Positions 12,125 to 43,275 of a stretch of DNA of 64,000 nucleotides are shown piece after piece (position 1 is the stretch's first letter; each line of letters starts with the position of its first letter). The position numbers were made by a program, and so were the translations under genes. Location of the stretch: NCBI GenBank assembly GCA_002104945.1, contig MCFH01000008.1:248001-312000 (forward strand), given 5' to 3'. The notes beneath the pieces are model-generated. The model searched no databases and was not told the origin of the DNA. It worked only from the letters and a program-made list of their open reading frames with translations. This DNA is from Piromyces finnis finn (lineage: Eukaryota > Fungi > Neocallimastigomycota).

Positions 12125-15100
12125 TTATTCAATAATAAATTTCAATAGTTCCTTCTTTTCTTTAATAACATTCTTTATATTACCATGCGAATAAATAATA
12201 ATATTATAATAAAATCTATAAAATATGATGTAATTTGCTATTAAAAAATTATCTTTTTGTGTTATTTTACAGTTACAAGTATATGATTTATGATGTAAAC
12301 ATTTCTCTGGTTTTAAAGAAATAAAATAGTATTTTGGTTCATTTCCTTTTTTTTTAATTATATAATATACTCTATCCCATATAAATATAATCAATAAAGG
12401 AAAATAGCATAATATTCCTGTGATAAAATTAAAAAAATTATAAGATTTTGTTGATATTCCTTTGAAAAATAAAAATGTATAACTTATTATCTTTAGTGTT
12501 TTTATAATATATAATAATAATATTTATGGGGAGAAGTAAATATATATATATATATATTAATAAAATATTAATAAAATAAAAAAAAAAAAAAAAAAAGATT
12601 TACAAAATAAATAAAAATTATATTTACATTAGATAAAGGTCCTAAGGTAACTAATATTATAATTGAATATCCTATATTTTTTAAACTCTTAAAAATAAAT
12701 ACATAATTTCTTACTTTTTTGACTTTTACCAATGTATAAATAACATAAAAGAATTCAATAATATTCATTACAAAGTTTAACTTATATAATGGACATTCAT
12801 ATACCCATTTTCCATTTTTATCTTGAATAAAATTATCACCACCATATTTAGAATTATTTTTCATTATCAATGTTATTAAAATAAAGGATAATATAACTAT
12901 ATAAATTAATATAAATTCAATATTTAATGTATAAAGCGTAACTGTTTTTTTATTTAGAATATCTGTGTAAGTGTTATACAGTTCAGTCGCTAGATTTGAC
13001 GTTGATGAAGAAAAGGAATCATTACTATAACTGGAAATACCAGAATTACTGTTAAATATTTTTCTGGAAATATCATTAAATATTTTGAGTTCTCGTTCAA
13101 TTCTATATAATATTTTTTCTTCCAATGTCATTTCATATTTTTCAAATTTTGAAGCTAAACTTTTACTCAAATCACTATATTTTTGATGTTTTTCACTAAA
13201 TTGACTCTCACTCAGATGTATATTATCTTTTTTTATTTGTTCATAATCTATCCCTAACACATCCCCAGTGGAAATATATATATTTAATATTAAATACATC
13301 AATATTACTCCACTATGTTTGAAAATAACTTTTATTGAGCAATCTTGATAATTTGAAAAGGAATTGAAATTAAGACTTGTGAAATAAAGCAACATACCCA
13401 GTAATAATAATTCGGTGTTTAAATATCCATTACATTCTATTATTTTTTGTTTTTTAAATATCGTAATGAATATCATAATAAGTATAGTAATAATGGCTAT
13501 AGGAACATTAATTACGTGAATATATTTAATATAACTTTTATTTTTTTTTTTAGAAATAACCATTAATATAAAAAGTTCAAATAGAAAAGTTAAATTTTAA
13601 ATTTTTTTTTTTTATTTTATAAAATGAATATATAAAATTACCTCAAATCTTCATAATTCCTATTTTGACATTTACTTCCAATCCATCCCTGTAAACATTC
13701 ACAATGATTATTTTTTATATCATTAGAATTTATATCTTCTCCTTTCATACAAATAGCTTTGTTATCGTTCACTGGGCAATCATCCTCACATCTTGGAATT
13801 TCACAATAAAATATCTTATTCTTAAATATTTTAATTTGTTCTTCCTTACATTCATGAATAGATATATTTAAATAATTGTAATTAAATTTTATATCATAAT
13901 TCTCTAATTCAAACTTCACATTTAAAAGTGTTGCCTTTGAAACATAAATTCTGAAATCCTTAATTTCACATTTACCTAAAATAATGATTTAAATATTTTA
14001 AACTTTTATATTAATTTTATATATTAAAAAAAATAAATAAAAAAAAAAAAAAAAGGATAAAAAATATAAACATTTCATTCTAATAGATACTAATGTTTAA
14101 TATACCATCATAATAAAAATATACCTTTGGAAAAATAGCACATGTCATTACTTAATATAATTATATTATCTTCTTCTTCTTCTTCCTGGTTATACCGAAA
14201 TACTCTTAAATTCATATTTTGATACATTCTTGATATATCATAAACTGTTTGATTAAAATTATCAAGCAATTCAAAATCTAAAGGTAATAATTCACCACTA
14301 TACAATTTATTTTTAATGTATTCTTCATTAACTTTTATTATATAAGGTTGAGTAGCATAATTATTACCATGTGATTCTGAAGTATTATTAATAAATTTCA
14401 CATCAAACGATTTTGAATCAATTAGTGTATTATTAGATTCTGAATATACAATATATATAGCACCTCCAGCATACGCATAGTTTTCATTGAATTCTACATT
14501 TGTTATTTTTAAATTTTTAAAATTTGAAAAATTTGAATATATTGAACCCCCAAAATATTTAGATTTATTTTTTATAAACTTGGTATCTAATAATTCTATT
14601 AAAGAATTTTCATAATCAAGTGATTTTGAATTTATATAAATGGCAGCGCCATTTAATGCTTGATTTCTTTCGAAAAGACAGGACTTGATTTTAATATTTA
14701 AACTATTATTATTTATAAAACTCCTATAGTAGATGAATATTAAAAAAAAAAAATAATTATTATTCAAATATTTATACTTTTTTTTTTCCCATATAATAAA
14801 TAAGAAAAAAAAACGTACAATGTTCCGCCATTATATTTCAATATATTATTTATAAAGTTTGATTTAGTTATGCATACATTTGCATTATTATAATTTGAAA
14901 TTAATCCAAATTTATATTTATTAATATTTTTATTATCTGAAAATGTACTATTATTTATATTAAATATTGACTAAATATAAAAAAGAAAAGAGTTGTTAGA
15001 ATATGCAAATATTAATAACAATATTTATATATATTTAATATTATCACAATTCTTTTAATTTACATTTAGTGCTCTATTATCTACTAGGGATCCATAGATA

Positions 15101-17028: not shown

Positions 17029-17405
17029 TTTAATTATATGTATTTGTTTTCTTTTTTTTTTTTTTTTTTACATTACATTATCATTTTATTTTATTTTATT
17101 TTATTTTGCTTATAATTTATATATATATATATACTTATTAATTGAAATAAAAAAAGTATATATTTAAAAAATATAGCTTTAATATTGTTTAAAGATAAAA
17201 ATAAAAAACAAAAGAATATGAAAAAAAACTATACTACTTTCATTTAAAAAAAAAAAAAAAAAAAAAAAGAATATAAAAAATATATATATAATAAGTTACT
17301 CTATAAAAAAATTAATAGTTTTATTTTATCCTCATAGCTTATAGTTCATAGGAATATAATATTTTATAATGATTTAAATTATATATTAACATTATTTCAA
17401 TATTA

Positions 17406-17629
17406 GACACGTGATCAAATTGACTATAAGAGGCTTAGCATTGTAGTTGTGAAATATCGTACAACGACATGCATCTAATGTACATGGATTAAGTGAGCGT
17501 CGAAGCTGAAGAAACAGTATGACAGACCAGGAGGGTCACAACCACCTAGCAATAGGAATGAGCCAACGTTTCTCTAAGAACCACCATTGGAGCTAACTCT
17601 GATCGATGGGAGAAATGCACTCGGAAGTT

Positions 17630-17655
<26 letters not shown>
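17406..17655 (+). mobile_element. Short retrotransposed insertion (SINE-like element or 5'-truncated copy of a related LINE)
   Basis: GC-elevated island ending GGAAGTT plus an A-tail (17630-17655). Flanked by the 12-bp direct repeat ATTTCAATATTA (17394-17405 and 17655-17666). 17495-17538 matches LINE 30262-30305 at 39/44 nt, ungapped. Confidence 0.85.
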
Positions 17656-17660
<5 letters not shown>

Positions 17661-18144
17661 ATATTAATATAAAATTTAAGTAAAAAAAGTTCTTTATTAT
17701 TTAATTAAAATTTCCTATAAAAAGAAATTGGATAATTACATATTTATTTATATTTTATTATCATATATATAAATTTAAAATGCCAATAATAACCATTCAT
17801 TTTTTAAAATATTAAATAGAAAAAATAGTAAAATTACTACTTTTTTTTAAAAAATAAAAAATACTTTTTATATTGAAGTCTTATTCATATACTTTTAAAA
17901 TAAAGGTAATCATTATTTTTTCTACCACTAATTAAGAAAACTTTTTTGAAAAAGAGGAAAAACTTTAAATACAAAAAAATATTAATATTTTCCCTAAAAT
18001 TTAATATGGAAAAAATATTTAGAAAAACAAAAAAATTTTCCATAGTAAAAATAGTGAAGGGAAATATAAATGAAATTTTGATATTTAATTAATTTTTAAT
18101 ATTAAATTCCTACTTTACCATGAAATTTATGTATAAAAAAAAAA

Positions 18145-18217
18145 TACACCATGATACTATGTGAAGTATCACATAGTACCATAGTATCATAGTGTGTGTG
18201 TTTTTTTTATCCCCACA
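18145..18217. repeat. Nested inverted repeats built from CATAGTA/TACTATG units
   Basis: TACTATGTGA (18155-18164) pairs with TCACATAGTA (18169-18178). ATGATACTATG (18151-18161) pairs with CATAGTATCAT (18180-18190). CACAT-AGTA-ATGTG at ~18204-18217. Confidence 0.6.
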
Positions 18218-20303: not shown

Positions 20304-23300
20304 ATGTCAGCTACAGAAAATACAGTTGATATAACGGATGTACCAGCGTCTAATGATAAAACTATAGATCCTAAAATAGAGGATAATGAGGCTAAACCTG
20401 TATCCTATTTAGGTCTTTTTAAATATTCAACAACTCTTGAAAAATTCATGGTAATTTTCGGTCTTATTGGTGCAATAGCCCAAGGTCTTACCATGCCAAT
20501 TATGATTGAAGTTATGAGTGATTTAATTAACATATTCATGAATCTTGTAGCTTCTGTAACCATTAGAAATTTAATTGGTATTCAAGATAATGATGACCTT
20601 ATTGTCGAATTTTTAAATAAAGCCACTGGTGGCGACCAACAAGCATTAGGTTCATTTTTAGCTCAACATCCAGAAATTGATATAAATAAATTACAAAATG
20701 CCTCCCAAAGTTTCGATGCTTCTGCTTACGGTGAAGCCTTCAATGTTGCTTCTTTATTTATGCCAAGTCATGATTTTTGGCATCAATTCCGTAAATATAT
20801 GTTATATTTAGTCATTGTAGCTATTGTTTCTTTTGTTGGTTCATTCCTTATGGATGCTTTCCTCACAGTATCATCTATGCGTCAAGTTACCACTATAAGA
20901 TCATTAACATTTAAATCTATTATAAAGCAAGAAATTCCATGGCATGAAAAAACAAGTCCAGGTGAATTAGCTTCTCGTATTATTAGCGATACTATTTTAA
21001 TTGAAGAAGGTATAGGATTTAAACTTGGTATGGTTGTACAAAGTGTAGTTACATTCATTGCATGTTTCGTATTGGCTTATAAGGCAGGTTGGAAATTATC
21101 ATTGGCAATGTCAGTAATTATACCTATAATTCTCATATTAGTTGTTGGTATGGCTGTTGTATTAAGAAAGTATACTAAAAAAACTCAAGATGCCTACGCA
21201 GAATTAGGTGGTATTGCTCAAGAAGCCTTCTCTCAAATTAGAACTATTGTTTCTTTCGGTACTGAACAAAAAGAAATTGATCGTTATGTTAGCAAATTGA
21301 AACCAACCAAGAAGTATGGTATTATTAAAGGTAATGCATTTGGAATTACCCTTGGTCTAGTATTTGGTGTTGTTTTCTCTTCTTACTCCATTGCTTTTAT
21401 TTATGGTACACACCTTATTCAAGATGGTGAAATGCAATATGGTGATGTTCTTAGTGTATTTATGGGTATTATGATGGGTGCAATGACTTTTTCTGGTGTA
21501 GGTGCAATGTTAAGTTCTTTCAGTGAAGCCACTGGTGCTGCTGCAAAACTTTTCGATATTATTGAACGTGAACCAAAAATTAAATTAGAAGGTGGTTTAA
21601 TTCCAGATAAACCAACAGAAGGTCATATTGAATTCCAGGATGTTCGTTTCAACTATCCTTCTCGTCCAGACGTAGAAGTATTAAAAGGTATTTCTTTCAA
21701 ATGTTTACCTGGTCAAACTGTAGCCTTAGTAGGTGCTTCTGGTTCCGGTAAATCAACAGCTGTCCAATTATTAGAAAGATTCTACAACAAAAAGAGCGGT
21801 AGAATTTTAATTGATGGAAAGGATATCGAAGAATATAATGTTCAATGGATTCGTTCACAAATCGGTTTGGTATCGCAAGAACCTACTTTATTCGATAATT
21901 CTGTTGCTAAAAATATTGCTATTAATAGTCCAAATGCTACTCAAGAACAAATTGAAGAAGCTGCTAAATTAGCAAATGCTCACGAATTCATTCAAAAATT
22001 ATCAAATGGATATGAAACTAGTACTGGTGAAAGAGGTTTACAAATGAGTGGTGGTCAAAAACAACGTATTTGTATTGCTCGTGCTTTAATTAATAATCCA
22101 AAGATTTTATTATTGGATGAAGCTACCTCTGCATTAGATAATAAATCGGAAAAGGTTGTTCAAGCCGCTTTAGATTCTGCCGCTTCAGGTAGAACTACAT
22201 TAGTTATTGCTCATCGTTTATCAACAATTAAAAACGCTGATTTAATTATTGTTATGGAAAAGGGTATTATTATTGAATCCGGTACACACGATGAATTAAT
22301 GAAAATGAAAAAGTATTACTATAACTTAGTTAAAAATCAAGAAATTAAAATTAAGGAAGATGAAAAAGATCCAGATTCTGAAGCTGAGGATGGTGATCCA
22401 GATGCCATTCAACAAACTCAATTTGTTGAACCAGTCACTACTACCCGTCGTGAAACCACTGTTTTAAGTCGTATTGCCTCTTCTATTTCAATGTCTCGTC
22501 GTCAAACTACCGGTGGATTAAGTGAAAAGAGTACACATGAAGCATCTGGCAAATCTTATGGATTAAGCGATATGGAATGGAAAAGATACTTTAATATGAA
22601 TAAACCATATTGGTTAACTAATTTACTCGGATTTATTGGTGCTTTATTTAATGGTGCTATTCAACCAGCCTTTGCCTTTATTTTCTCAGAAGCTCTTAAT
22701 ACTTTCACTAAACAAGGTGATGATTTAATTGATGGTGGAAAATTCTGGGGTATTATGTTCATTGTTTTAGGTGTTTGTAATTTCTTCTCTTTCTACTTTA
22801 ATATGGGTGGTTTCTTCATTGCTGGTGAACAACTTTCCTACGATTTACGTAAAAGTATGTACAACAATATGATTCGTCAAGAAGTTGGATTCTTTGATAC
22901 CAATGATATTGGTGATGGTACAGAAAAGGCAGGTGGTCAAGGACGTGGTGCAACAACCACTAGTACAGGTACATTAACCGCTAAATTAGCTACTGAAGCA
23001 GGTCTTGTTAATGGTTTAAACACAAATATTGGACAAGTATTCCAACAAATTGTCACTGTTGTTGGTGGTTTTGGTATTGCCTTCTATAATGGATGGAAAT
23101 TAACTTTAATTCTTTTAATTGCTGTTCCATTCCTTTTCATTGGTTCATTCATTAGAGGAAAAGCTATCAGAAACAAAAATAAGGAAAACAGAGCTATTTT
23201 TGAAAACAGTGCTAAAGTTGCCACTGAAGCCATCATTAGTGTTAAAACGGTTTACTCATTAAATCTTTCAGATTACTTTATCAATTTATATGATGAAAAA

Positions 23301-24410
23301 TTAAGAGAACCAGAAAAGCGTCTTGAACACAGAGCCTATATTAGTGCTATTGGTACTGGTTTTAGTAATGCTGTTTCTTTTGTTGCCTTCATTATTGGAT
23401 ACTGGGTTGGTGCTAAATTCATTGAAAATGGTGAAATTCAATTTGATAATATGTTCAAGGTTTTAATGGCTATTATTTTAACTGCCATGGCTGTTGGTCA
23501 AAGTAGTTCAATTATTAGTGAAACAAACAAGGCTGTAGAAGCTTTCCTTCACGTTCTTGAAATTATTGATCGTAAACCAAAAATCGATGCTCGTGATACT
23601 AATGGTACCACAAAATCCTCAGAAGACTTTAAGGCTGATCTTGAATTTAGTAATATTCGTTTCCGTTATCCATCTCGTCCAAAGGTCACCGTTTTACGTA
23701 TGGGTGATAAAAAGATTAACATACCATCAGGTAAAATGTGTGCTTTTGTTGGTGCTTCTGGTAGTGGTAAAAGTACAATTATTGGTTTACTTCCACGTTG
23801 GTATGATATTAACCATGGTTCAGTTAAGGTGGATGATGTTGAAAATAAAGAATATAACATTAAATGGCTTCGTCAACAAATTGGTATTGTTAATCAAGAA
23901 CCATGTCTTTTCAACATTTCTATTAAGGAAAATATTAAATATGGTAAATTGGATGCTACCGATGAAGAAATTTATGAAGCTTGTAAAAAGGCAAACATTC
24001 ATGACTTTATTATGTCTCTTCCAGAAAAGTATGATACCTTAGTTGGTGGTCTTGGTACTTCACAAATGAGTGGTGGTCAAAAGCAACGTATTGCTATTGC
24101 TCGTGCCATGATTCGTAATCCAAAGATTTTATTATTAGATGAAGCTACCTCTGCTTTAGATGCCGAATCCGAATTAATTGTACAAAAAGCATTAGAAGAA
24201 GCATCTGAAGGTCGTACTACCATTACCATTGCTCATCGTCTATCTACTATTAAAAATGCTGATCTTATTTGTGTCTTTAGAGAAGGACGTATTATTGAAA
24301 TGGGTAATCACGAAGAACTTATGGAAAAGAAGGGAGAATATTATAATATGGTTTTAGCTGGTGATGGTAGTATTGCTAGTGGAAATGAAATTGCTAAAAA
24401 GGATGAATAA
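20304..24410 (+). CDS. ABC transporter subfamily B (MDR1/P-glycoprotein-like), paralog 1, intronless
   Basis: Single 1368-aa ORF with TMD-NBD-TMD-NBD layout. Walker A GASGSGKS twice, signature MSGGQKQRI twice, ILLLDEATSALD twice, and AHRLST. Confidence 0.95.
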   Translation: MSATENTVDITDVPASNDKTIDPKIEDNEAKPVSYLGLFKYSTTLEKFMVIFGLIGAIAQGLTMPIMIEVMSDLINIFMNLVASVTIRNLIGIQDNDDLIVEFLNKATGGDQQALGSFLAQHPEIDINKLQNASQSFDASAYGEAFNVASLFMPSHDFWHQFRKYMLYLVIVAIVSFVGSFLMDAFLTVSSMRQVTTIRSLTFKSIIKQEIPWHEKTSPGELASRIISDTILIEEGIGFKLGMVVQSVVTFIACFVLAYKAGWKLSLAMSVIIPIILILVVGMAVVLRKYTKKTQDAYAELGGIAQEAFSQIRTIVSFGTEQKEIDRYVSKLKPTKKYGIIKGNAFGITLGLVFGVVFSSYSIAFIYGTHLIQDGEMQYGDVLSVFMGIMMGAMTFSGVGAMLSSFSEATGAAAKLFDIIEREPKIKLEGGLIPDKPTEGHIEFQDVRFNYPSRPDVEVLKGISFKCLPGQTVALVGASGSGKSTAVQLLERFYNKKSGRILIDGKDIEEYNVQWIRSQIGLVSQEPTLFDNSVAKNIAINSPNATQEQIEEAAKLANAHEFIQKLSNGYETSTGERGLQMSGGQKQRICIARALINNPKILLLDEATSALDNKSEKVVQAALDSAASGRTTLVIAHRLSTIKNADLIIVMEKGIIIESGTHDELMKMKKYYYNLVKNQEIKIKEDEKDPDSEAEDGDPDAIQQTQFVEPVTTTRRETTVLSRIASSISMSRRQTTGGLSEKSTHEASGKSYGLSDMEWKRYFNMNKPYWLTNLLGFIGALFNGAIQPAFAFIFSEALNTFTKQGDDLIDGGKFWGIMFIVLGVCNFFSFYFNMGGFFIAGEQLSYDLRKSMYNNMIRQEVGFFDTNDIGDGTEKAGGQGRGATTTSTGTLTAKLATEAGLVNGLNTNIGQVFQQIVTVVGGFGIAFYNGWKLTLILLIAVPFLFIGSFIRGKAIRNKNKENRAIFENSAKVATEAIISVKTVYSLNLSDYFINLYDEKLREPEKRLEHRAYISAIGTGFSNAVSFVAFIIGYWVGAKFIENGEIQFDNMFKVLMAIILTAMAVGQSSSIISETNKAVEAFLHVLEIIDRKPKIDARDTNGTTKSSEDFKADLEFSNIRFRYPSRPKVTVLRMGDKKINIPSGKMCAFVGASGSGKSTIIGLLPRWYDINHGSVKVDDVENKEYNIKWLRQQIGIVNQEPCLFNISIKENIKYGKLDATDEEIYEACKKANIHDFIMSLPEKYDTLVGGLGTSQMSGGQKQRIAIARAMIRNPKILLLDEATSALDAESELIVQKALEEASEGRTTITIAHRLSTIKNADLICVFREGRIIEMGNHEELMEKKGEYYNMVLAGDGSIASGNEIAKKDE

Positions 24411-24905
24411 ATAAATTGATTTTTATTTCATTTTCATTTTATTTTTTAAAAAATATTTATTTTACCATACATAAAAATTATTTATATATTATTTACCATT
24501 CATTTATTATTATTATCTCAAAGTTATATTTCATTTTAAAAAAACATTTTTTTTTTTTTTTAATTTTTTGTTATTCTATTTCATATTTATTTAAGAACTA
24601 AAAAAGAAAAAAATAATATAAGCATTTAAAGATTTATTATAAAATATCATCAATATTACTAAAAAAATAAAGAAAGAAATTATATAATTATTATAGAGAA
24701 TATAGAAAATAATATTTAATAAAATTTGCCAATATAATAAAAAAAAAAAAAAAAAATAATAGTTTAACAATACGTGAAATTTAGTGTTGTGTGTGCAGTG
24801 TTGTAATGTTGTAATGTGGGAAAAAAAAAAAGAAAATTGAAATAGTCTTCTTCCTATGATATATATATAAATTTATTTTTTAGTTTTTACACTTTTCAAT
24901 TGATT

Positions 24906-25198
24906 GTCCTCTTGGGAACGTGCCTTCATTTATTTAATAAATGTAGTTTCTCAAGGGGGTCTACTCATGCTCATGGTACTGAGAGAGTAGAAAGAATTAA
25001 ATCCAAGTATTGCGCAATGGATGCTTGGTGCCCTCTTAGGAACGTGCCTTCATTTATTTAATAATGGAGTTTATCAAGGGGGTCTACTCATGCTCATGGT
25101 ACTGAGAGAGTAGAAAGAATTAAATCCAAGCATTGCGCAATGGATGCTTGGTTAGTCTTTAAGGGAAAATTATTAGGACTAAGCTCATGGTACTGAGC
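24906..25198 (+). repeat. Two tandem ~124-bp monomers plus a partial third hairpin at the LINE 5' end
   Basis: 24906-25029 and 25030-25152 are near-identical. CTCATGGTACTGAG occurs at 24970, 25093 and 25184. Confidence 0.9.
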
Positions 25199-25801
25199 GA
25201 TTAAAAAACATTTTATTCATCGAATTTAAGTATTTGATGAATAAGTTGAATGTTTGATACTCAGGTAAGTTTGTATAGTATTTAATTAGAAGAGTAATAC
25301 ATTTTGTTGCTGTATTTTTTTCTTTTATTCATGTATTCATGTAGTACTACTCTTCTCTTGTAAGAATCCAATGTAGTCAACTTTAGCATTTGCATTGTAT
25401 TTTTATATTCATGTAGCTATTGTTGTATTGTTTCTTGTAAGAGACTGATTCACTCTACATCATGTAAAAATACTATTCACAAGCTTTCTGGTGTCGACAT
25501 TCTTGATTCAAATTTTTTACCAATTTAAATATTTAATGAAAAGTAAAGTCAAACAATTTTAGTGTCAAAAGCGAATCGAATTTACTAACAACAAACCAAA
25601 ACTAGAATTTTTAAAAAAAGTTAACAACTAGAATTCAAAAAAAAAAAAAGAAACTTTAAACAAAGCATCGTAACAATTTTTGTACTATCCAGTACTTTTA
25701 ATAAGAGAGAGAGAGACAGATTTTTTTCCATATACGTTATATTTATAATTTTTATTAGTATTTATTTTATATTCAATATTTTTTAATTAGAATTAATTAT
25801 C

Positions 25802-28800
25802 ATGTCAGTCCTTTATATTAAAGATAAGAATTATATCAGACGTGGTACCCGGTCTTATGGTATCCCCTTAGATGATATTCGCTCCTTCTTTATCCGTGGT
25901 ATTCGATCATGGTCAGTAAATATGCTATGGGAAAAACTCGAGGTTATTCTGGAAGATAAATTTAATTCAGTTATTAGTGTTAAATATTTTCAGACTTTCA
26001 ATGATCACTTTTTCTTAGTCAAGGTTCATGGTTCATCGAAAGATTGTATTAAAATCTTACACATGTTAAAGAAGAAACTTTCAGTTACCTCAATTTCCTT
26101 TTCAGCTCGTAGTAGAAGGAATCACAAATACACTTTTTCCACACTCAAACGTAAAATTTTAGTTTCTAATAAACATCAACTTTCAATTCAACAATCACTT
26201 CAACAATCAGTTCAACAATCTCATCAACAATCCGATCTTCAACAAGATCTTCAACAAGATCTTCAACAAGTTTCCCATCATGAAAATATTCCAGATCTAC
26301 AGCAAACACAATTTCAATCTCAACATTCAACAATTAATTCTAATAGCTCTATCAACTCTGATAACAGTTCAATAGTTAATAGTTCTTCAGTTTCACAGCC
26401 ATCTAGTAATAGCTCTACTTATTCCTCTGATGCATCATCCATTAATAACGATGACTTTAATAATAATAATAATAGCAACGATTCTTCCTCATCCAACAAG
26501 CCTGATAACTTTTCTTTTTGTCTTAGTTGGAACACCAATGGGTGGAATCATGAAAAGAGAGATAGTATTAGCTATTTCACAGCTATTTTCAAACCATTAT
26601 TTTTATGTTTCCAAGAAACTGGTAATGGTTCTGGTTCGAATGCAGGTTATCCTTGTCGTGTTACTTTGCGGAACTATAGACACTTTTTCAAGAAAGCTGA
26701 CGAATCAGTTCCGGGAATGAGAGGTTTATATTTAGGTTTTCACAATTCGTGTCAAGCCTCACTTGAAAACTTCTCTGGAAAGTATATTATTTCTATTTAT
26801 ACTTTTAGTCTCTGGAATAGATTCAAATGCTCGATTGGAAATGTTTATATGCCTCATAGTCATCACAACATCTATGTTGATCATGCAAAGTTAGAAGTTC
26901 GCTTGTGGTTACAAACTCATTCATCCCATCCATCGATTCTTGTTGGTGATTTTAATATGTCTAAAGTAAAATTATCCAACTGGTTATCAACTAATGGATT
27001 AGGAGATTGGGAAATTCTTCCGCTTAGAGGGTCTACTATCTCTTGGACTCGAGGTGATCAATCTTCCGACATTGACCATGCTCTTATCAATTCGAAGATG
27101 AAAGATCTTATTCACTCAGCATCATTTATAAATAATTTTTATCCTGTATCAGACCATAAGCCACTTCTTATTAATGGTAAAATTATTCCTATGGAAGATT
27201 TTTCTAATGACTTTAATGTTCCTAAGAAAATTCTGAAATGGAATAGATTAAAATGTATTGAGGAAAAGAAATCTATTCTCAGTCATAATAAATTCCAAAT
27301 TCTTTCAGCAAAATTCAACGATCCTAATGTTTCTACAGATGAACTTTCCAAAGAGTTTACTTCAACTGCTTTTTCAATTGCAGACGAGCTCAGTATTACC
27401 TCAACTAATAATGTTATAAAGTCTTCGTTTCATATTTCACAACAAATTTTTAATCTTCAAAAAATCAAAATGAAGTTGTATAAGAGATTTAAAAAAGAAA
27501 GAATTTATGATATAGATGAATTTATTAAAAGAATTAAAATCTACCGTAAGCTCATTGATTACATCCACAAAAGATGTAATGAATTTAGGAAGCAAGAATA
27601 TCTTCATTGGATTAAAACAGGATGTGAGTATATGAAGAGTCATAATCCTAAGAAGGCCTGGAAATGGATCAAAAAAACTGCAAAAATTGGAAAAGATTCT
27701 TTCTTTATTGCTCAACCAATTAAAAACAAAAATGAAGAATTAGTTGTTGCTACAGAAGAACAACTGGAAGTGTGGCATGATCATTTCGAAAACCTTGCAT
27801 CAGATCCAAGTGGTGTAAGTCTTGATTTGGAGCATTGGTATGAAGAACCAACGAATAAACGTTTTTCACTCCCTATGCTTGATGAATGGGATATCAACCA
27901 AGATATTAGTATTGATGAAGTCAAGTCAGCTATCCTCTCTACTCCAAATTATAAAGCATCAGGTCCGGATGGTATTCCAATTGAATTTTACAAAGCATTA
28001 ATTCCATCTAGTAATGATTCTAATAATGCTACAGGTAATAATTCTTCTGGTAATACTACTTCAGATAATGATGCTCATGGGTTAAATTTTATTCTTAAAT
28101 TATTCAACCGTATTTGGGATGGAGATTTCCCCTGCTCTTGGAATGAATCCAGTATTGTTTCTATTCCTAAGAAGGGAGATTTGACAGATTGTGATAACTA
28201 TCGAGGTATATCACTTATCAATAATGGTATTAAGTTGATTTCCAAAATTGTCACCACTAGAATTTCAGAATATGGTTTAAAGAATAATTTCATTAGACCT
28301 GAACAATTTGGTTTTCGAAAAAAGGAAGAAAGTATCAGTCTTTTCATTTCAATCCAAGAAATATGCCGTAGACGTCAATTAGATAATAAAGAGACATATT
28401 TGGCCTTTTTAGATCTCAGGAAAGCATACGATTCAGTCCCAATCGGTAATATTATCCATAAATTAGATTGTTTAGGAATCCGAGGTAAGAATTTACAATT
28501 TATCAAAAATTTATATTTAACATCTAAGGCTAATGTCAAATTAGATGGACAATTCTCGAAATCTTTTGATGTGAAGAAAGGAGTCCGTCAAGGATGCCCT
28601 CTTTCTCCTATTCTCTTTAATCTCTTTATTAATGATATTTTTAAAGAATGCGAAGATCTCGGAGTCAGTTTAGGTGACACTCGATGCTGTGGTGGACTTT
28701 TTGCAGATGATATAGTTATTTGTGCTCCAACAAGAGGATGCTTAAAAAAGATGCTTAGAAGAGTTAATGAATGGGCATTGTATAATGAAATGGAATTTGG

Positions 28801-30340
28801 TATCCAGAAATGTTCAACGATGGTGATTCGTCCTGAATCAATAGAAAATCAGAACAAGAGAGATCCAACATTTTACTTAGCAGGACAACCCATTCCAACT
28901 ACTGATTGCTATACTTATCTTGGTGTTCCATTTGATAAGAATTTGTCCCTTAAACCAGTAATTAAAACTCTTAATAACAAGGTTTTGAAAGGACTTTTTT
29001 CAGTCAGAAAATTCTTAAGAAATCCTAATATTCCTATTCCTTTCAAAAAACTAGTACTTAACTCTCAAGTGATTAGCAGAGTTTCATACTTTGCACCATT
29101 ACTTGGATCCAACAAAGCTAGGTCTAGGATTGCTCAGAAGCATGTTAACAAAGGAATACGATGGATTGCCGGAGTTCATAAAGCTGTATCGTTTATATCT
29201 TTATACTCTATCTCAAAAGATTTGAATATTCCTCCATTGTCAGCCAAATGTGCTTTAGCTCAGGTTAGATGTTTTAACAAATGGAAAAATTCAAATTGTA
29301 TTATCTCATACCTTGTCAATTACATTCCTAAATTTAGAAAATACACGTGGTGCAAATCAAGTAGGACACTTGATAAAAAACTAAAGAAACATGGAGATGT
29401 TAAAGCAGTTAAAAACTTTTATTGGAAAGATCTCAAAGGGAATTCAATCAAAGCGCAATATTATGATGATAATAAATTTATTGAAACTAAAGATTTTATT
29501 AAATTATGTTATGAGTACCCAGAGTTTGCCTATGGCTTCTACTGGCTATTGAAAGCAAGAAGCGGATACAAGTTGGATGCTAGAGTTGCCAAAGCTGCTA
29601 AATTTGTTGATCCAGTTTGTCCTAACTACTGTCCATGTTGCAAGTGTGGAGATCAAAGTATTAAACATTGGTTATTAGATTGTCCAACATTTAGAGATAT
29701 CCGTATTAAACATTATGATTCTATAGTCCATCTATTAAATTTTTTCAGTCAACGTAATTCCAATAGTCCTATCAATAATAATGAAATTGATAATGTCAGC
29801 AGAGATAGCAATAACAGTAATAGTAATAGTAACAATAGTAATAATAACAATAGTAATAATAACAATAGTAGTATTAGTAATAATAGAAATAGTAATAATA
29901 ACAATAGTAGTAATAGAAATAATAATATTAGTAATGATAGCAATAGTGATGATAATAATTCTAATTTAGATAGTAATTTAGTTAATGATAGTAATAGTTC
30001 TAATAATGCGGTGAATATTAATGTGTATGATTATTCTAGTGTGTGCAGTAAAATATTTAAATTCCTTCTTGGGGGAAGAAGTTTTAACAATATTAATTAC
30101 AATTCAAGGGAATGGAAAGAACTTTGTAAGCGTCAGATTCAATCTGGTACTAATGAAGGAACACCATTCTTGACGGTAACCGCGGAACTTCTAACCAAAA
30201 TCATGCCTTTTGCTATTGGCCAGCAATGGTCTATGTTCAAAAGGTTTGAAGCAACATCCAAGAGCGTCAATGCTGAAGAAACAGTAAGACAGGCCAGGAG
30301 GGCCAGCGCAACCAATGGAGATCATAATTTTGTTCCATGA
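25802..30340 (+). CDS. LINE polyprotein: N-terminal RRM-like region, APE endonuclease, reverse transcriptase, C-terminal CCHC-type zinc knuckle
   Basis: Uninterrupted 1512 aa. APE motifs SWNTNG, FQET, GNVYMP, VGDFN, SDIDH, SDHKPL. RT motifs KASGPDG, NYRGISL, QFGFR, FLDLRKAYDSV, GVRQGCPLSPILF, LFADD, YLGV. Knuckle CPCCKCGDQSIKHWLLDC. Confidence 0.95.
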   Translation: MSVLYIKDKNYIRRGTRSYGIPLDDIRSFFIRGIRSWSVNMLWEKLEVILEDKFNSVISVKYFQTFNDHFFLVKVHGSSKDCIKILHMLKKKLSVTSISFSARSRRNHKYTFSTLKRKILVSNKHQLSIQQSLQQSVQQSHQQSDLQQDLQQDLQQVSHHENIPDLQQTQFQSQHSTINSNSSINSDNSSIVNSSSVSQPSSNSSTYSSDASSINNDDFNNNNNSNDSSSSNKPDNFSFCLSWNTNGWNHEKRDSISYFTAIFKPLFLCFQETGNGSGSNAGYPCRVTLRNYRHFFKKADESVPGMRGLYLGFHNSCQASLENFSGKYIISIYTFSLWNRFKCSIGNVYMPHSHHNIYVDHAKLEVRLWLQTHSSHPSILVGDFNMSKVKLSNWLSTNGLGDWEILPLRGSTISWTRGDQSSDIDHALINSKMKDLIHSASFINNFYPVSDHKPLLINGKIIPMEDFSNDFNVPKKILKWNRLKCIEEKKSILSHNKFQILSAKFNDPNVSTDELSKEFTSTAFSIADELSITSTNNVIKSSFHISQQIFNLQKIKMKLYKRFKKERIYDIDEFIKRIKIYRKLIDYIHKRCNEFRKQEYLHWIKTGCEYMKSHNPKKAWKWIKKTAKIGKDSFFIAQPIKNKNEELVVATEEQLEVWHDHFENLASDPSGVSLDLEHWYEEPTNKRFSLPMLDEWDINQDISIDEVKSAILSTPNYKASGPDGIPIEFYKALIPSSNDSNNATGNNSSGNTTSDNDAHGLNFILKLFNRIWDGDFPCSWNESSIVSIPKKGDLTDCDNYRGISLINNGIKLISKIVTTRISEYGLKNNFIRPEQFGFRKKEESISLFISIQEICRRRQLDNKETYLAFLDLRKAYDSVPIGNIIHKLDCLGIRGKNLQFIKNLYLTSKANVKLDGQFSKSFDVKKGVRQGCPLSPILFNLFINDIFKECEDLGVSLGDTRCCGGLFADDIVICAPTRGCLKKMLRRVNEWALYNEMEFGIQKCSTMVIRPESIENQNKRDPTFYLAGQPIPTTDCYTYLGVPFDKNLSLKPVIKTLNNKVLKGLFSVRKFLRNPNIPIPFKKLVLNSQVISRVSYFAPLLGSNKARSRIAQKHVNKGIRWIAGVHKAVSFISLYSISKDLNIPPLSAKCALAQVRCFNKWKNSNCIISYLVNYIPKFRKYTWCKSSRTLDKKLKKHGDVKAVKNFYWKDLKGNSIKAQYYDDNKFIETKDFIKLCYEYPEFAYGFYWLLKARSGYKLDARVAKAAKFVDPVCPNYCPCCKCGDQSIKHWLLDCPTFRDIRIKHYDSIVHLLNFFSQRNSNSPINNNEIDNVSRDSNNSNSNSNNSNNNNSNNNNSSISNNRNSNNNNSSNRNNNISNDSNSDDNNSNLDSNLVNDSNSSNNAVNINVYDYSSVCSKIFKFLLGGRSFNNINYNSREWKELCKRQIQSGTNEGTPFLTVTAELLTKIMPFAIGQQWSMFKRFEATSKSVNAEETVRQARRASATNGDHNFVP

Positions 30341-30583
30341 CAAAATTTTGATCTTTGGCTCGGTGTCCCATTGGAAGTCAAATACAATTATTATACTTTA
30401 GTATGATAGTGGTTTTCTTACTTTAATTAAAATTACTAGAATACATTATACCCAATTTTTATTCATTTGTGTTTATTTAAACATATTATTTTTATTTTTA
30501 TTTTTATTTTTAATTTTTTTATTACATGTATTATAATTTTAATTAAATTAATAATAAAGTTTAAAATATTTGATGCCGTTAAA

Positions 30584-30620
<37 letters not shown>

Positions 30621-31567
30621 GATATACAAACTATTCAAATTATTAAATTATTATATATCAACTATAATCATTATGATTTATTTATTACATCCTTTTATAC
30701 ATATCAACTCAACAGTATTATCTAGGTATTTGGGAATCTATAACAATAAAAAGATTACAATTTTTTTTTTTTATTGAACATACCCAAATCGTTTATACCT
30801 ACACTAGATCAATTTTATTTTATTATTTTAAAAAAAAAAAATTATAATACAGAAAATTTGTATCCAAAAAAAAAAAAAAAAAAAAATAGACTTACAATGA
30901 AAAAAGCACAAACCTTTTTTGTTATGTTTTTATTAGACTTTACATATTTCCAGTTATCTTTCTTCAATGATTATTATGAATAATTTAATATGTTATTATT
31001 AAAAAAACTTTTAAAATATATCATATAATAATTTTAATAATTTTAGCAAAAATTAAAGATAAATTATTATATTTTAAGCAATGTCATTAATTTATTTAAA
31101 ATAAAATAGTTTACAAAGTTTTAATTATAAAATAATAAATTGTTAAGAAACAATTAGTAATGTAATAATTATTTTTTAAAATAATAAAAATCACAATTTA
31201 TACAAAACTGCTATATTTATGAAAATATTATAATTGTTGTATACTTTTAAAAACTTATCATTATAATCAAAAACTTTTTTTGATAATATCTGTGTAAAAA
31301 AAGAAAAAACTCCTCCTCATAAATCTTTAAAAATTTTTGTGCTAGATAAAAAAAAAAAAAGATATATATATTAAATTTTATTTAAAATGGTACCACCTAC
31401 GTGCATATGCATATGCATATGCATATACATACATTAAAATATTAAAATAGTATATAACTGATATTGATAAAAAGAAAATTGTTTCGGTTATTAATAAAAA
31501 AAATACATTTTTATATTCTTTATACTCTGTATATAGTATAATATTATTAGTTATTTAATTTTAATCG

Positions 31568-33041: not shown

Positions 33042-36000
33042 TATGAAATTATTAAATTATTAAATATTTTATTTATATTTTATTTTGTTATTTTTCATTT
33101 TTAATTAGTCTGATGATTTTTGGAGTAAATTCCATACCTATATGATATATTTGGGTTTAATTGCTATTCTTTCTTTCGTTTCATCCTTTTTAATGGATTC
33201 AATGTTGACTGTTTCAGCGTTAAAACAAGTTACTAGAATTAGATCATTAACATTTAAATCTATTGTTAAACAAGAAATTCCATGGCATGAAAAAACAAGT
33301 CCAGGTGAATTAGCTTCTCGTATTATTAGTGATACTATTTTAATTGAACAAGGTATTGGACTTAAACTTGGAATGGTTCTTCAAAGTTTCGTTACCTTTA
33401 TAGCTTGTTTTATACTGGCATATAAAAATGGATGGAAATTATCATTAGTCATGTCATCAATTATTCCAGTGTTACTTATATTAATGGGTATCCTTGTCGT
33501 TATCTTGAAAAAATATACGAAAAGAAGTCAAGATGCCTACGCCGAATTAGGTGGCATTGCTCAAGAAGCCTTCTCTCAAATTAGAACTATTGTTTCTTTC
33601 GGTACTGAACAAAAAGAAATTGATCGTTACGTTGACAAATTGAAACCAACTAGAAAATATGGTATCATTAAAGGACACACTCTTGGATCTGTTCTTGGTA
33701 TGACTTTTGGTATTATATATGCATCTTACTCCATTGCTTTTATTTATGGTACACACCTTATTCAAGATGGTGATATGTTATATGGTGATGTATTAGGAGT
33801 ATTTATGGGTATTATGATGGGTGCAATGATGTTATCCACTGGTAGTGCCTTTTTAAATTCGTTTGGTGAAGCCACTGGTGCTGCTGCAAAACTTTTCGAT
33901 ATTATTGAACGTGAACCAGAAATTAAATTAGAAGGTGGTTTAATTCCAGATAAACCAACAGAAGGTCATATTGAATTCCAGGATGTTCGTTTCAACTATC
34001 CTTCTCGTCCAGACGTAGAAGTATTAAAAGGTATTTCTTTCAAATGTTTACCTGGTCAAACTGTAGCCTTAGTAGGTGCTTCTGGTTCCGGTAAATCAAC
34101 AACAGTTCAATTATTAGAAAGATTCTACAACAAAAAGAGCGGTAGGATTTTAGTTGATGGAAAGGATATCGAAGAATATAATGTTCAATGGATTCGTTCA
34201 CAAATCGGTTTGGTATCGCAAGAACCTACTTTATTCGATAATTCTGTTGCTAAAAATATTGCTATTAATAGTCCAAATGCTACTCAAGAACAAATTGAAG
34301 AAGCTGCTAAATTAGCAAATGCTCACGAATTCATTCAAAAATTATCAAATGGATATGAAACTAGTACTGGTGAAAGAGGTTTACAAATGAGTGGTGGTCA
34401 AAAACAACGTATTTGTATTGCTCGTGCTTTAATTAATAATCCAAAGATTTTATTATTGGATGAAGCTACCTCTGCATTAGATAATAAATCAGAAAAGGTT
34501 GTTCAAGCCGCTTTAGATTCTGCCGCTTCAGGTAGAACTACATTAGTTATTGCTCATCGTTTATCAACAATTAAAAACGCTGATTTAATTATTGTTATGG
34601 AAAAGGGTATTATTATTGAATCCGGTACACACGATGAATTAATGAAAATGAAAAAGTATTACTATAACTTAGTTAAAAATCAAGAAATTAAAATTAAGGA
34701 AGATGAAAAAGATCCAGATTCTGAAGCTGAGGATGGTGATCCAGATGCCATTCAACAAACTCAATTTGTTGAACCAGTCACTACTACCCGTCGTGAAACC
34801 ACTGTTTTAAGTCGTATTGCCTCTTCTATTTCAATGTCTCGTCGTCAAACTACCGGTGGATTAAGTGAAAAGAGTACACATGAAGCATCTGGAAAATCTT
34901 ATGATTTTAGTGATATGGAATGGAAAAGATACTTTAATATGAATAAACCATATTGGTTACCTAATTTACTCGGATTTATTGGTGCTTTATTTAATGGAGC
35001 AATGCAACCAGCCTTTGCCTTTATTTTCTCAGAAGCTCTTAATACTTTCACTAAACAAGGTGATGATTTAATTAATGGTGGTTTGTTCTGGGGTTTAATG
35101 TTCATTGTTTTAGGTGTTTGTAATTTCTTCTCTTTCTACTTTAATATGGGTGGTTTCTTCATTGCTGGTGAATACTTATCCCACGATTTACGTAAGAAGA
35201 TGTATAACAATATGATTCGTCAAGAAGTTGGATTCTTTGATACCAATGATATTGGTGATGGTACTGAAGAAGCAGGTGGTCGTGGACCACATTCAACAAC
35301 CACTAGTACAGGTACATTAACCGCTAAATTAGCTACTGAAGCAGGTCTTGTTAATGGTTTAAACACAAATATTGGACAAGTATTCCAACAAATTGTCACT
35401 GTTGTTGGTGGTTTTGGTATTGCTTTCTTTAACGGATGGAAATTAACTTTAATTCTTTTAATTGCTGTTCCCTTCTTATTTGTAGGATCTGCCCTTTCAA
35501 TGAAGTCCATGAAAACAAAGAATAAAGAAAATAGAACTATTTTTGAAAGTAGTTCTAAAGTTGCCACTGAAGCCATCATTAGTGTTAAAACGGTTTATGC
35601 CTTAAATCTTAATGAATACTTTACAAAATTATATGATGAAAAGTTAGAAGAACCAAAGAAAAGAATAGAACGTAGATCATACATCAGTGCTATTGGTACT
35701 GGTTTTAGTAATGCTGTAGCTTTCCTTGCATTTATTTTAGGATATTGGGTTGGTGCTAAATTTATTGAAAAAAATGAAATTCAATTTGATCATATGTTCA
35801 AGGTTTTAATGGCTATTATTTTAACTGCCATGGCTGTTGGTCAAAGTAGTTCAATTATTAGTGAAACTCAAAAAGCAGTTGAAGCATTTATGCATGTTAT
35901 CGAAATTATTGATCGTAAACCAAAAATTGATGCTAGTGATCCAAGCGGTAAAACAAAAGAAATTACTGATTTACATGCAAATCTTGAATTTAGTGAAATT

Positions 36001-36750
36001 CGTTTCCGTTATCCATCTCGTCCAAAGGTCACCGTTTTACGTATGGGTGATAAAAAGATTACAGTCCCATCAGGAAAAGTATGTGCCTTTGTTGGTGCTT
36101 CTGGTAGTGGTAAAAGTACAATTATTGGTTTACTTCCACGTTGGTATGATGCTAACCATGGTTCAGTTAAGATGGATGATGTTGAAAATAAAGAATATAA
36201 CATTAAATGGCTTCGTCAACAAATTGGTATTGTTAATCAGGAACCATGTCTTTTCAACATTTCTATTAAGGAAAATATTAAATATGGTAAATTGGATGCT
36301 ACCGATGAAGAAATTTATGAAGCTTGTAAAAAGGCAAACATTCATGACTTTATTATGTCTCTTCCAGAAAAGTATGATACCCAAGTTGGTGGTCTTGGTA
36401 CTTCACAAATGAGTGGTGGTCAAAAGCAACGTATTGCTATTGCTCGTGCCATGATTCGTAATCCAAAGATTTTATTATTAGATGAAGCTACCTCTGCTTT
36501 AGATGCCGAATCCGAATTAATTGTACAAAAAGCATTAGAAGAAGCATCTGAAGGTCGTACTACCATTACCATTGCTCATCGTTTATCAACAGTTAAAGAT
36601 GCTGATCTTATTTGTGTCTTTAGAGAAGGACGTATTATTGAAATGGGTAATCACGAAGAACTTATGGGAAAGAAGGGAGAATATTATAATATGGTTTTAG
36701 CTGGTGATGGTAGTATTGCTAAGGGAAATGAAATTGCTAAAAACACATAA
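32178..36750 (+). CDS. ABCB/MDR1-like paralog 2 (4 exons)
   Basis: Exons 32178-32389, 32513-32600, 32756-32926 and 33109-36750 join in frame at GT-AG sites. Starts MSATENTVDITDVP like paralog 1. Two complete NBDs. Confidence 0.93.
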
Positions 36751-39010: not shown

Positions 39011-42000
39011 ATATAGCATTAAAACAAGCAATAAAAATTGGTAGTATTCCAGGATTAGATCCATCATTAGCAGCTTTATTTATGACTGTAATTAAAAAAA
39101 CAGAATTAATTAATATCTCGATTCAATAAATAGAAATTATTTTATTTATCTATTCTATTATATATTAATTTATAATTGTAGAAAGATGAATTTTGGCATG
39201 AATTTCATATATATATGTTATATTTTGGATTAATTGGAATTATGGCATTTATAGCAACATTCTTAATGGACGCCTTTTTAACTATAACATCTACTCGTCA
39301 AACAACAAGAATTAGAGGATTAACTTTTAAATGTATAAACTTTTTTTTTATTGCATTAATCATATTTTAAATATAAATCAATAATACTAGTTTTCAATTT
39401 AAAAACATTAATAATACTTTATCAAAAAATATTAAAAAAAAAAAATCATTAAGAAAATAGAATATATTAATTTAATAATTTTTTATCCATAATAATAATA
39501 TAATAATATATATATTTATTAAAATAATATCCTTTAATTTTTTTTTATATACATAAAAATTTAATTCTGTGGATTGTTAATTAATGATAAACAGCCATTA
39601 TTAAACAAGAAATTGCTTGGCATGAAAAAACTAGTCCTGGTGAATTGGCTTCCAGAATTATTAGTGACACAATGTTAATTGAAGATGGTATGGGTTTTAA
39701 ACTAGGAAGTGTTATACAAAGTGTAGTTACATTTATTGGATGCTTCATTTTAGCTTATATTTCAGGATGGAAATTATCTTTAATGATGTCTATTATCATT
39801 CCAATAATTTTTATTATCGTTAGTTAGTATTACAATGAAAACTAAAATATATTCATATGAATTTTTTTTTTATTTCATAATTAATTAATGCTATTTATTT
39901 ATATATATTTATTTATTATCTTTTTATTAATACTTTTAAGTGATTATGAGTATTATATTAAAAATTTATACAAAAAAAAGTCAAGATGGATATGCCGAAT
40001 TAGGTGGTATTGCTCAGGAAGCCTTTTCTCAAATAAGAACTATTGTATCATTTGGTACGGAACAAAAAGAAATTGATCGTTATGTAGAAAAATTAAAACC
40101 AACTAGAAGATATGGTATAATTAAAGGCCATACCTTGGGTATATGTTTAGGTCTTGTATTTTGTATTATTTATTCTTCATTTGCTATCGCTTTCATCAAA
40201 GGAACTCGTTTTATTAGAGATAATGAAATGTCATACGGTAATGTTCTTAATGTTTTTATGGGAATTATGATGGGTGCAATGACACTTTCAGGTGTCGGTG
40301 CCACTTTAAGTGCTTTCAGTGAAGCTATCGGTGCTGCAACAATTATTTATGATATTATTGAAAGAAAACCATTAATAAATACAAATACAGGGTATATTCC
40401 AGATGAACCTACTCAAGGTCATATTGAATTCCAAGATGTTCATTTTAATTATCCCTCTCGTCCAGATGTAGAAATCTTAAAAGGTATTTCTTTCAAATGT
40501 TTACCTGGTCAAACAGTAGCACTAGTTGGTGCTTCCGGTTCTGGTAAGTCTACTACAGTACAATTACTCGAACGATTTTACAATAAAAAGAGTGGTAGAA
40601 TTTTAATTGATGGTAAAGATATTGAAGAATATAATATTAAATGGATTCGTTCTCAAATTGGTTTGGTATCTCAAGAACCAACCTTGTTTGACGCTTCAGT
40701 CACTAAAAATATTTCTATAAATACACCTGATGCTTCCAAAGAACAAGTAGAAGAGGCCGCTAAACTTGCTAATGCTCATGATTTTATTATGAAACTTTCC
40801 AACGGTTATGATACTAGTACTGGTGAACGAGGTTTACAATTAAGTGGTGGTCAAAAACAACGTATTTGCATTGCACGTGCTCTCATGAAAAATCCCAAAA
40901 TATTATTGTTAGATGAAGCTACCTCTGCCTTGGACAATCAATCCGAAAAGATTGTTCAATCAGCATTAGAATCTGCAGCTTCAGGTAGAACTACATTAGT
41001 TATTGCTCACCGTCTCTCCACCGTAAAAAACGCTGATTTAATTATTGTTCTAGAAAAAGGTTCAATTATTGAATCTGGTACACACGATGAATTAATGGCT
41101 CTAAAGCAATACTATTATAATTTAGTTAAAAATCAAGAAATTAAAGTTGAAGAAGAAAAAATTAAAGATGAAATTGAGATGGAAAACGAAAATGAAAACG
41201 AAAACGAATATAGTACCACCGATATTAACAAGAGTCAAGAAAGTAATTTGAATGAAATTGATAGGAATCAAAATATTTCATCACGAAGTCAATCAAAATC
41301 CCTATCCCAAAATCTAAATAGTTATGACGACTATACCATGGAGAATCCTATTGTAGGTAGAATTTCATCCAACCTAACCCTTTCATTGAACAGTCTCTCA
41401 AATGGAACCAAAAATCAATATATTATTGAAGAACGTCGAGAAAAATCTTATGGTTTTAAAGATATGCCATGGAAAAAATATATCAATATCAATAAACCCT
41501 ATTGGTTACCCAATATTTTAGGATTTTTTGGATCCGCTTGTAATGGCGCTATTCAACCAGCATTTGCATTTATTTTTTCATCTGCACTGAATACATTTAC
41601 CAAACATGGTGATGATCTAATTAAGGGAGGAGAATTTTGGGGATTAATGTTTATTCTTTTAGGGGTGTGTAATTTCATCTTCTTCTATTGTAATCTTGGA
41701 GGATTTTTCATTGCTGGAGAGCATTTATCCTATGAACTTCGACGTCGTATGTATAACTCCATGATTCGACAAGAAGTCGGATTTTTCGATACAAATGATA
41801 TTGGAGATGGTTCAGAAAAATCATCGGGTCCCAATAATAATACCGCAAGTACTGGTACCTTAACCGCAAAATTAGCCACTGAAGCAAGTTTAGTTATTGG
41901 ATTAAATTTAAACATTGGAACCATTTTCCAACAATTAGTAACCGTAATTGGTGGATTTTGTATTGCCTTTATCTATGGTTGGAAGTTAACGTTGATTTTA

Positions 42001-43275
42001 TTGATCTTGGTTCCATTCCTTTTTATAGGTTCCTATGTACGTATGCAATCCATTAAAAATCGTAGTCAAGAAAATCGTAATGTCTTTGAAAGTAGTTCCA
42101 AAGTAGCCTGTGAAGCAATTATTAGTATTAAGACAGTAGCTGCTTTAAATTTAGAAGATTACTTTGAAAACTTGTATTATCAAAAGTTGGATGAACCCAC
42201 TAAACGTCTTGAACGTCGTGCCTATATTAGTGCTATTGGTACTGGTTTTAGTAATGCCATAGCTTTTTTTGCCTATATGGTAGGTTATTGGATTGGTGCT
42301 GTATTTATTGAAAAGGGATATATGGAATTTAATAACATGTTCAAAGTAGTTATGGCTATTATTTTAACTGCCATGGCGGTAGGACAAAGTAGTAGCATTG
42401 CACCAGAAGCCAATAAAGCGATTGAAGCCTTCATACACATTTTAGAAATTATAGAGAGAAAATCAAGAATTAATGCTGAAGACGAACATGGTATTAAAAA
42501 AGAAGAAGACGGATTAAACGGAGACCTTGAATTTAAAAATATATTCTTTAGCTATCCGTCTCGTCCAAATGTTACCGTATTACAAATGGGTGATAAACAA
42601 ATTAAAATTCCAACAGGTAAAATGTGTGCCTTTGTAGGGGGTTCTGGATGTGGAAAAAGTACAATTATTGGTTTACTTCCACGTTGGTATGATGTTACCG
42701 AAGGATCAGTTAAGGTGGATGATGTTGAAAATAAAGAATATAACATTAAATGGCTTCGTCAACAAATTGGTATTGTTAATCAGGAACCATGTCTTTTCAA
42801 CATTTCTATTAAGGAAAATATTAAATATGGTAAATTGGATGCTACCGATGAAGAAATTTATGAAGCTTGTAAAAAGGCAAACATTCATGACTTTATTATG
42901 TCTCTTCCAGAAAAGTATGATACCTTAGTTGGTGGTCTTGGTACTTCACAAATGAGTGGTGGTCAAAAGCAACGTATTGCTATTGCTCGTGCTATGATTC
43001 GTAATCCAAAGATTTTATTATTAGATGAAGCTACCTCTGCTTTAGATGCCGAATCCGAATTAATTGTACAAAAAGCGTTAGAAGAAGCATCTGAAGGTCG
43101 CACCACCATTACCATTGCTCATCGTCTATCTACCATTAAAGATGCTGCACAAATTTGCGTATTTAAGGATGGTCGTATTATTGAAATGGGTAATCATGAA
43201 GATCTTATGAAGCAAAAAGGAGAATATTACAATATGGTGTTAGCAGGTGACGGTGATGTAGAAAAAAAGAAATAA
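37981..43275 (+). CDS. ABCB/MDR1-like paralog 3 (7 exons, Asn-rich N-terminal extension)
   Basis: Exons 37981-38323, 38436-38646, 38781-38862, 39010-39087, 39182-39332, 39595-39822 and 39941-43275 join in frame. Walker A GASGSGKS and GGSGCGKS, signatures LSGGQ and MSGGQ. Confidence 0.9.

Follow-up and report, generated by a model that had tools for sequence, protein, structure and literature searches.

A recently inserted SINE-like copy in Piromyces finnis and the two-hairpin RNA module it shares with an L1-like LINE

The choice of template RNA by LINE enzymes is known for a few animal elements only. Alu has no sequence in common with L1, and its recognition proceeds via the poly(A) tail and ribosome docking. 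Stringent LINE-SINE pairs possess a common 3' stem-loop, as described for eel UnaL2/UnaSINE1 and zebrafish ZfL2 (PMC1636434, PMC4176376). L1-clade LINEs with a structured 3' end common to SINEs occur in monocots and a green alga, exemplified by maize ZmSINE2/3 and LINE1-1_ZM (Ohshima, 2012, PMC3472496). Fungal SINE-LINE pairs include Mg-SINE/MgL of Magnaporthe and SINE2-1_BG/Tad1-24_BG of Blumeria (PMC3747384), and our search of the literature for SINEs or LINE-SINE pairs in the Neocallimastigomycota found none.

The locus described here lies in bases 248001-312000 of record MCFH01000008.1 from Piromyces finnis (assembly GCA_002104945.1), a stretch of 64,000 nucleotides that we call the window and whose positions are used throughout. 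It resembles each of these systems in part. In common with Alu and human L1, it comprises a poly(A)-tailed non-autonomous element, putatively copied by an APE-type LINE, with target-site duplications (TSDs) and frequent 5' truncation. As in UnaL2/UnaSINE1 and ZfL2, the non-autonomous element carries a small conserved hairpin of the LINE in which structure is maintained over loop sequence. It parallels the maize pair in that an L1-like LINE, although poly(A)-tailed, has a specific structured RNA in common with a SINE, and the likeness to the Magnaporthe and Blumeria pairs is that of fungal SINEs with a 3' part from a resident LINE.

A truncated copy of a high-copy SINE-like family

The insert is situated between annotated genes of the record and reads on the + strand. 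A TSD, ATTTCAATATTA, occupies 17394-17405 and is repeated exactly at 17655-17666, flanking a body at 17406-17629 that ends in ...CGGAAGTT and a pure A26 tail at 17630-17655. The first A of the 3' duplication also counts in the tail, and this ambiguity leaves a TSD of 11-12 bp; for sites chosen at random in this window, a repeat of the 12-mer at a distance of 200-300 nt downstream is found in only 0.26% of cases. An earlier note, made from the DNA letters alone, had described a clean 12-bp TSD and a poly(A) tail left by target-primed reverse transcription, and both hallmarks hold. The 224-nt body forms an island of 40% G+C in a very AT-rich window with an intergenic G+C of 16-20%. It contains no ORF of at least 30 aa and has stops in all frames. 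A 20-mer of the insert compared with metagenomes gave only four chance matches without similarity outside the 20-mer, and a 21-mer searched against viral and GTDB genome contigs was not found.

To place the insert in its family, contigs of four public runs (X1, X3, X7, X11; Logan contigs) were aligned to 17100-17950. In the DNA run X3, possibly the source of the assembly, 1033 contigs cover 17390-17621, and the flanks attract almost none. Among the 1033, 258 are at least 99% like the copy and 185 fall below 90%. Contigs of X7 (203 nt) and X11 (128 nt) match the copy with zero differences, indicating that it equals the commonest variant of the family, and on the basis of these contigs the copy at 17406-17655 is very recent. 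The labels of X7 and X11 name two other organisms, and their contigs, with depths no greater than 3-6, are identical to the copy within 17406-17608 and carry the same upstream 30 nt; these matches may represent sample carry-over or very close strains and are not evidence on species range. That X1, X7 and X11 are RNA runs is a guess made by the tool, and it lends no support to expression. Separately, X1 contigs fuse the repeat to an Illumina adapter at 17474 and 17554 (..CAAGCAGAAGACGGCATACGA), and these are library artefacts.

In all four runs, loose contig ends before 17406 share the sequence ...TTAGGGGGCGGTT (also read as ...AAACATTAGGGGGCGGTT) and extend up to 255 nt further. Neither the window nor the LINE within it contains this upstream sequence. 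Since other copies continue upstream at the point where position 17406 meets the TSD, the copy in the window is 5'-truncated and its head is missing. One 505-nt contig with approximately 300 nt upstream of 17406 suggests a full family length of about 530 nt. The element of roughly 250 bp proposed in the earlier note is thus a truncated copy, and 17406 is not the 5' end of the family.

The insert is short and non-coding, combines a TSD with an A-rich tail, and is dispersed at high copy number, all of which are properties of SINEs. It is a member of a high-copy, non-coding, poly(A)-tailed retroposon family that we term SINE-like. The term is applied in a looser sense, one that does not presuppose polymerase III transcription. 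The proposal of a non-tRNA SINE-like family accordingly stands in its SINE-like, non-coding and high-copy parts, and "non-tRNA" falls away with the missing head. For the same reason the lack of tRNA-type A/B boxes in this copy, reported previously, is uninformative: Rfam and ARAGORN (tRNA) searches of the insert yield zero matches in the part that is present, the 5' part of the family being missing from it.

A module shared with the last codons of an L1-like LINE

A full-length LINE occupies 24864-30617 on the + strand, flanked by a 9-bp TSD, TATGATATA, at 24855-24863 and 30618-30626 and terminating in an A32 tail at 30586-30617. Its intact 1512-aa ORF (25802-30340, + strand), which carries no gene annotation in the record, encodes a predicted endonuclease at aa 241-452 and a reverse transcriptase at aa 788-1043. 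Domain searches detect Exo_endo_phos (26.7 bits), RVT_1 (123.9 bits) and a weak zf-RVT near the C-terminus. The closest solved relatives of the ORF product are human L1 ORF2p (E 2e-31 to 4e-29), compared with 1e-16 for R2, and no Tad1-clade structure occurs among its solved-structure matches. Domains, tail and TSD argue for an APE-type, L1-like element, where "L1-like" is taken from the best solved relative rather than from phylogeny. This LINE is likely the autonomous partner of the SINE-like family or a close relative of that partner. A search of viral contigs with the LINE protein found no relative.

Two further features of the LINE and its surroundings were observed. Its 5' UTR contains two tandem units of about 115 nt (..CCTCTTGGGAACGTGCCTTCATTTATTTAATAA..) at 24906-25200. 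The window also carries three tandem full-size ABC-transporter paralogues on the + strand (20304-24410, 33142-36750 and 39940-43275), and insertion of the full-length LINE has separated the first of these from the second.

Positions 17495-17538 of the insert (+ strand) align without gaps to 30262-30305 of the LINE (+ strand), with 39 of 44 positions identical; the covariance model of this module, R1, scores 64.8 bits in the insert. The match at 30262-30314 is the only one of the insert in the window apart from poly(A) (blastn E 2e-9), all 44-mer matches of at least 33/44 in the window fall at this one place, and comparison of the insert with eleven LINE sequences reveals no similarity outside the module. 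The module consists of two hairpins. Hairpin 1, GTC..GCTG-AAGAAA-CAGT..GAC, spans 17499-17523 (+ strand) in the insert and 30266-30290 in the LINE. Hairpin 2, GACC-AGGAG-GGTC, spans 17525-17537 (+ strand) and 30292-30304. Three of the five differences (17502, 17504, 17520) are unpaired, and the remaining two, 17526 and 17536, form a single compensatory pair in hairpin 2, A-U in the insert (GACC/GGTC) and G-C in the window LINE (GGCC/GGCC). Read in the frame of the LINE, the insert gives D*VSVEAEETV*QTRRV where the LINE encodes SVNAEETVRQARRA, with stops at 17490-17492 (TAA) and 17520-17522 (AGA to TGA). The earlier note had anticipated the extent of this match, the compensatory pair, the retention of the upstream hairpin and both stops, each of which we recover. 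Its placement of the motif at the 3' end of the LINE was imprecise, in that the shared motif is real but lies in the last codons of the ORF. The distance from module to poly(A) is 280 nt in the LINE and 91 nt in the SINE.

The same note had held that the rest of the insert folds extensively. Every helix it named is indeed present in the minimum-energy fold, but the fold as a whole does not exceed shuffled controls (z=-0.64, 44/200). The hairpin at 17438-17472 (folded as 17430-17480) reaches z=-0.92 and the 3' domain at 17562-17622 reaches z=-1.86. The sole exception is the small CCTA-GCAA-TAGG hairpin, whose fold is equalled by just 3 of 200 shuffles. The module alone, folded as a single sequence, gives a modest z of about -1.7.

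In the LINE, the region 30200-30400 folds with z=-3.14. A third predicted hairpin at 30312-30374 (+ strand) crosses the stop codon, pairing the final codons (..DHNF) with the beginning of the 3' UTR; it is closed by an outer helix that reads CCAATGG/CCATTGG in the window and is followed by the conserved sequence GAAGTCAAA. A counterpart is predicted in seven of the eight lineages for which the 3' UTR is available (L005, L006, L009, L011, L012, L013 and L015), with fold z-scores of -2.9 to -3.5 in four lineages and compensatory changes both in GATC/GATC versus GACC/GGTC and in the outer helix, G-C versus A-U. The last approximately 200 nt of the LINE UTR are absent from the SINE. Beyond the module, local alignment of the SINE tail to the LINE is not significant (67/1000), and chained global alignment is suggestive (z=2.9, 9/500). 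On this basis LINE ancestry may extend over the entire terminal ~137 nt of the SINE, interrupted by a 39-nt insertion that follows hairpin 2, a possibility that we treat as a lead only.

RNA-level conservation of the module among LINEs

A protein search recovered 15 relatives of the LINE, 42-60% identical to it, in gut metagenomes and in assemblies of other anaerobic fungi. Ten of these were aligned at the DNA level with the window LINE (eleven LINE sequences from about nine lineages) and with the SINE, giving 12 sequences. The peptide KSVNAExTVRQASRASAT is conserved among the LINE relatives. RNAalifold predicts exactly hairpins 1 and 2 de novo from this alignment, and 97.7% of the cells across the 12 sequences are paired, compared with 16-40% when the partners are slid. 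Three of the eleven pairs contain double changes, in seven cells in total: U-A to C-G in L011/L012, G-C to A-U in the SINE, L005 and L015 (with A.C in L007), and C-G to A-U in L008 and L010. None of 500 shuffles reaches the observed pairing or covariation score and 45 of 500 reach the count of double-changed pairs, figures that must be read in light of the 12 sequences being related and of the capacity of shuffle controls to flatter a structure. The four inner pairs of hairpin 1 are invariant and hence uninformative either way.

The double changes fall on at least four separate branches of a protein tree built without the module. Because L008 and L010 lie in different clades of that tree, a minimum of four independent events is required. 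At the peptide level the changes are not silent (A..A, T..V, D..S), but the stem is preserved through them. Loop sequence is free to vary: loop 1 exists in several different versions, and each of the four bases is found at the central position of loop 2. Four-fold degenerate sites are identical at a rate of 0.90 within the module versus 0.45 at the other 93 sites of the last 450 codons (Mann-Whitney P=8e-6), and their G+C is 46% in the module versus 21% elsewhere. We read these comparisons as showing a module kept by selection on RNA structure beyond the constraint of the peptide. Recent homogenisation of LINE 3' ends was considered and rejected, since the loops are variable while the stems hold, a pattern that favours selection on RNA structure. 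The previous suggestion that the motif covaries and is conserved at the RNA level is borne out by the pairing, by the three double-changed pairs and by the frozen four-fold sites.

Several observations concern L006, a Neocallimastix lanati contig (JACVTC010000048.1). Its LINE copy at 14904-14962 carries an extra T in hairpin 2 (GGGCTTAG) that places a stop in frame, and the LINE remnant is fused into a gene model annotated as a "glycoside hydrolase" (P0015). The covariance model finds a weak additional match on the minus strand at 18130-18186 (21.2 bits, E 0.0014), inside a G+C island of about 245 nt that corresponds to no Rfam family. There, hairpin 1 takes the form GGC..GCTG-TTA-CAGT..GCC, which adds a third type of base pair at the position that covaries; the sequence lacks hairpin 2 and is followed by T14. 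This match may belong to a non-autonomous element that carries the module in another genus, or may be due to chance.

Probable mobilisation by the LINE and comparison with known pairs

The explanation that we consider probable is that 17406-17655 is a recent, truncated SINE-like copy mobilised by an APE-type, L1-like LINE through the shared two-hairpin module. The copy was inserted by target-primed reverse transcription, for which a LINE like the intact element lying 7 kb downstream would have supplied the enzyme. Members of the family carry an RNA module of approximately 50 nt comprising two hairpins, and the LINE has the same module within the last ~25 codons of its ORF. The LINE protein would bind this module on its own mRNA; the SINE-like family, if transcribed, would present the same module on its RNA and so be picked up in trans. 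Reverse transcription would then be primed on the poly(A) where AT-rich DNA has been nicked, and its frequent early arrest would give rise to truncated copies such as 17406-17629. As a counterpoint, a poly(A)-tailed L1-like LINE might not require a specific handle at all.

That counterpoint underlies an alternative in which the module is merely inherited, the SINE tail having been copied from a LINE lineage by template switching or recombination; the module would then seem conserved in the SINE only through the youth of the family, and poly(A) would suffice for mobilisation, as in Alu and human L1. Both elements end in poly(A), the chained alignment hints at a LINE-derived tail, and the states found in the SINE occur in LINE lineages as well (GTCGAA in L010, GACC/GGTC in L005 and L015), such that the compensatory pair may predate the SINE. 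An inherited tail accords poorly, however, with the divergence of the sequence outside the module almost beyond recognition while the module retains 39 of 44 positions with all changes structure-neutral, and RNA-level constraint on the module in LINEs implies a function there. We regard simple inheritance as unlikely. The module could instead be functional in the LINE in a capacity other than as a handle for reverse transcriptase, namely in translation termination or ribosome pausing, in RNA stability or export, or as a target of silencing. This reading, to which we assign a small chance, would fit a module that sits in the last codons, adjoins the third hairpin across the stop codon and is far from the start site of reverse transcription; it does not account for a non-coding SINE that lacks such a stop codon and yet has the module as its only significant match to the LINE.

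The earlier note had also offered the insert as the 3' end of a second LINE family, which here would mean a second autonomous family represented by a 5'-truncated copy. A copy identical to the commonest variant nonetheless has stops in all three frames (in the frame of the module, TAA shortly upstream of it and TGA inside it), and it is on these stops in a consensus-identical copy that we reject the proposal as very improbable. The upstream extension of other copies beyond 17406 might seem to favour it, as might the coding status of the module in LINEs, but the upstream 30 nt of those copies are closed in two frames, the frame of the module included, and the insert has zero similarity to the eleven LINE sequences outside the module.

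We return to mobilisation of the SINE-like family through the shared module. As a copy the insert is unremarkable, one truncated representative of a new SINE-like family, and the shared hairpin module, which is dual-coding, is the interesting part. Whether the handle of the LINE consists of two hairpins, perhaps three, embedded in its own ORF well away from the 3' end and captured by a high-copy SINE is a proposition that we consider evenly balanced. If true, the LINE would recognise its template stringently through an element internal to the coding region, and the two elements would form the first described LINE-SINE pair of the Neocallimastigomycota. Natural variation already marks the bases that are important, in that double changes preserve the stems, loop bases differ freely and synonymous positions are nearly fixed. 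The module doubles as protein code and offers a compact, testable candidate handle in a fungal phylum. The SINE-like family moreover accounts for a large repeat family in an industrially studied gut fungus.

Set beside the described systems, the Piromyces pair differs from each in a defined manner. In UnaL2/UnaSINE1 and ZfL2 the shared part is the extreme 3' tail, which belongs to the UTR and ends in short repeats, whereas in Piromyces it lies in the last codons of the ORF; the two elements share a structurally conserved stem-loop, as stringent pairs do, but not their extreme 3' ends. ZmSINE2/3 and LINE1-1_ZM belong to another kingdom and share 3'-end sequence instead of coding sequence. Mg-SINE/MgL and SINE2-1_BG/Tad1-24_BG are found in Dikarya with other partner LINEs, whereas the present host belongs to the Neocallimastigomycota and the candidate partner is L1-like. 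We therefore read the insert and the LINE as a new SINE-LINE pair of a known kind, whose unusual point is a putative handle located inside coding sequence, far from the poly(A).
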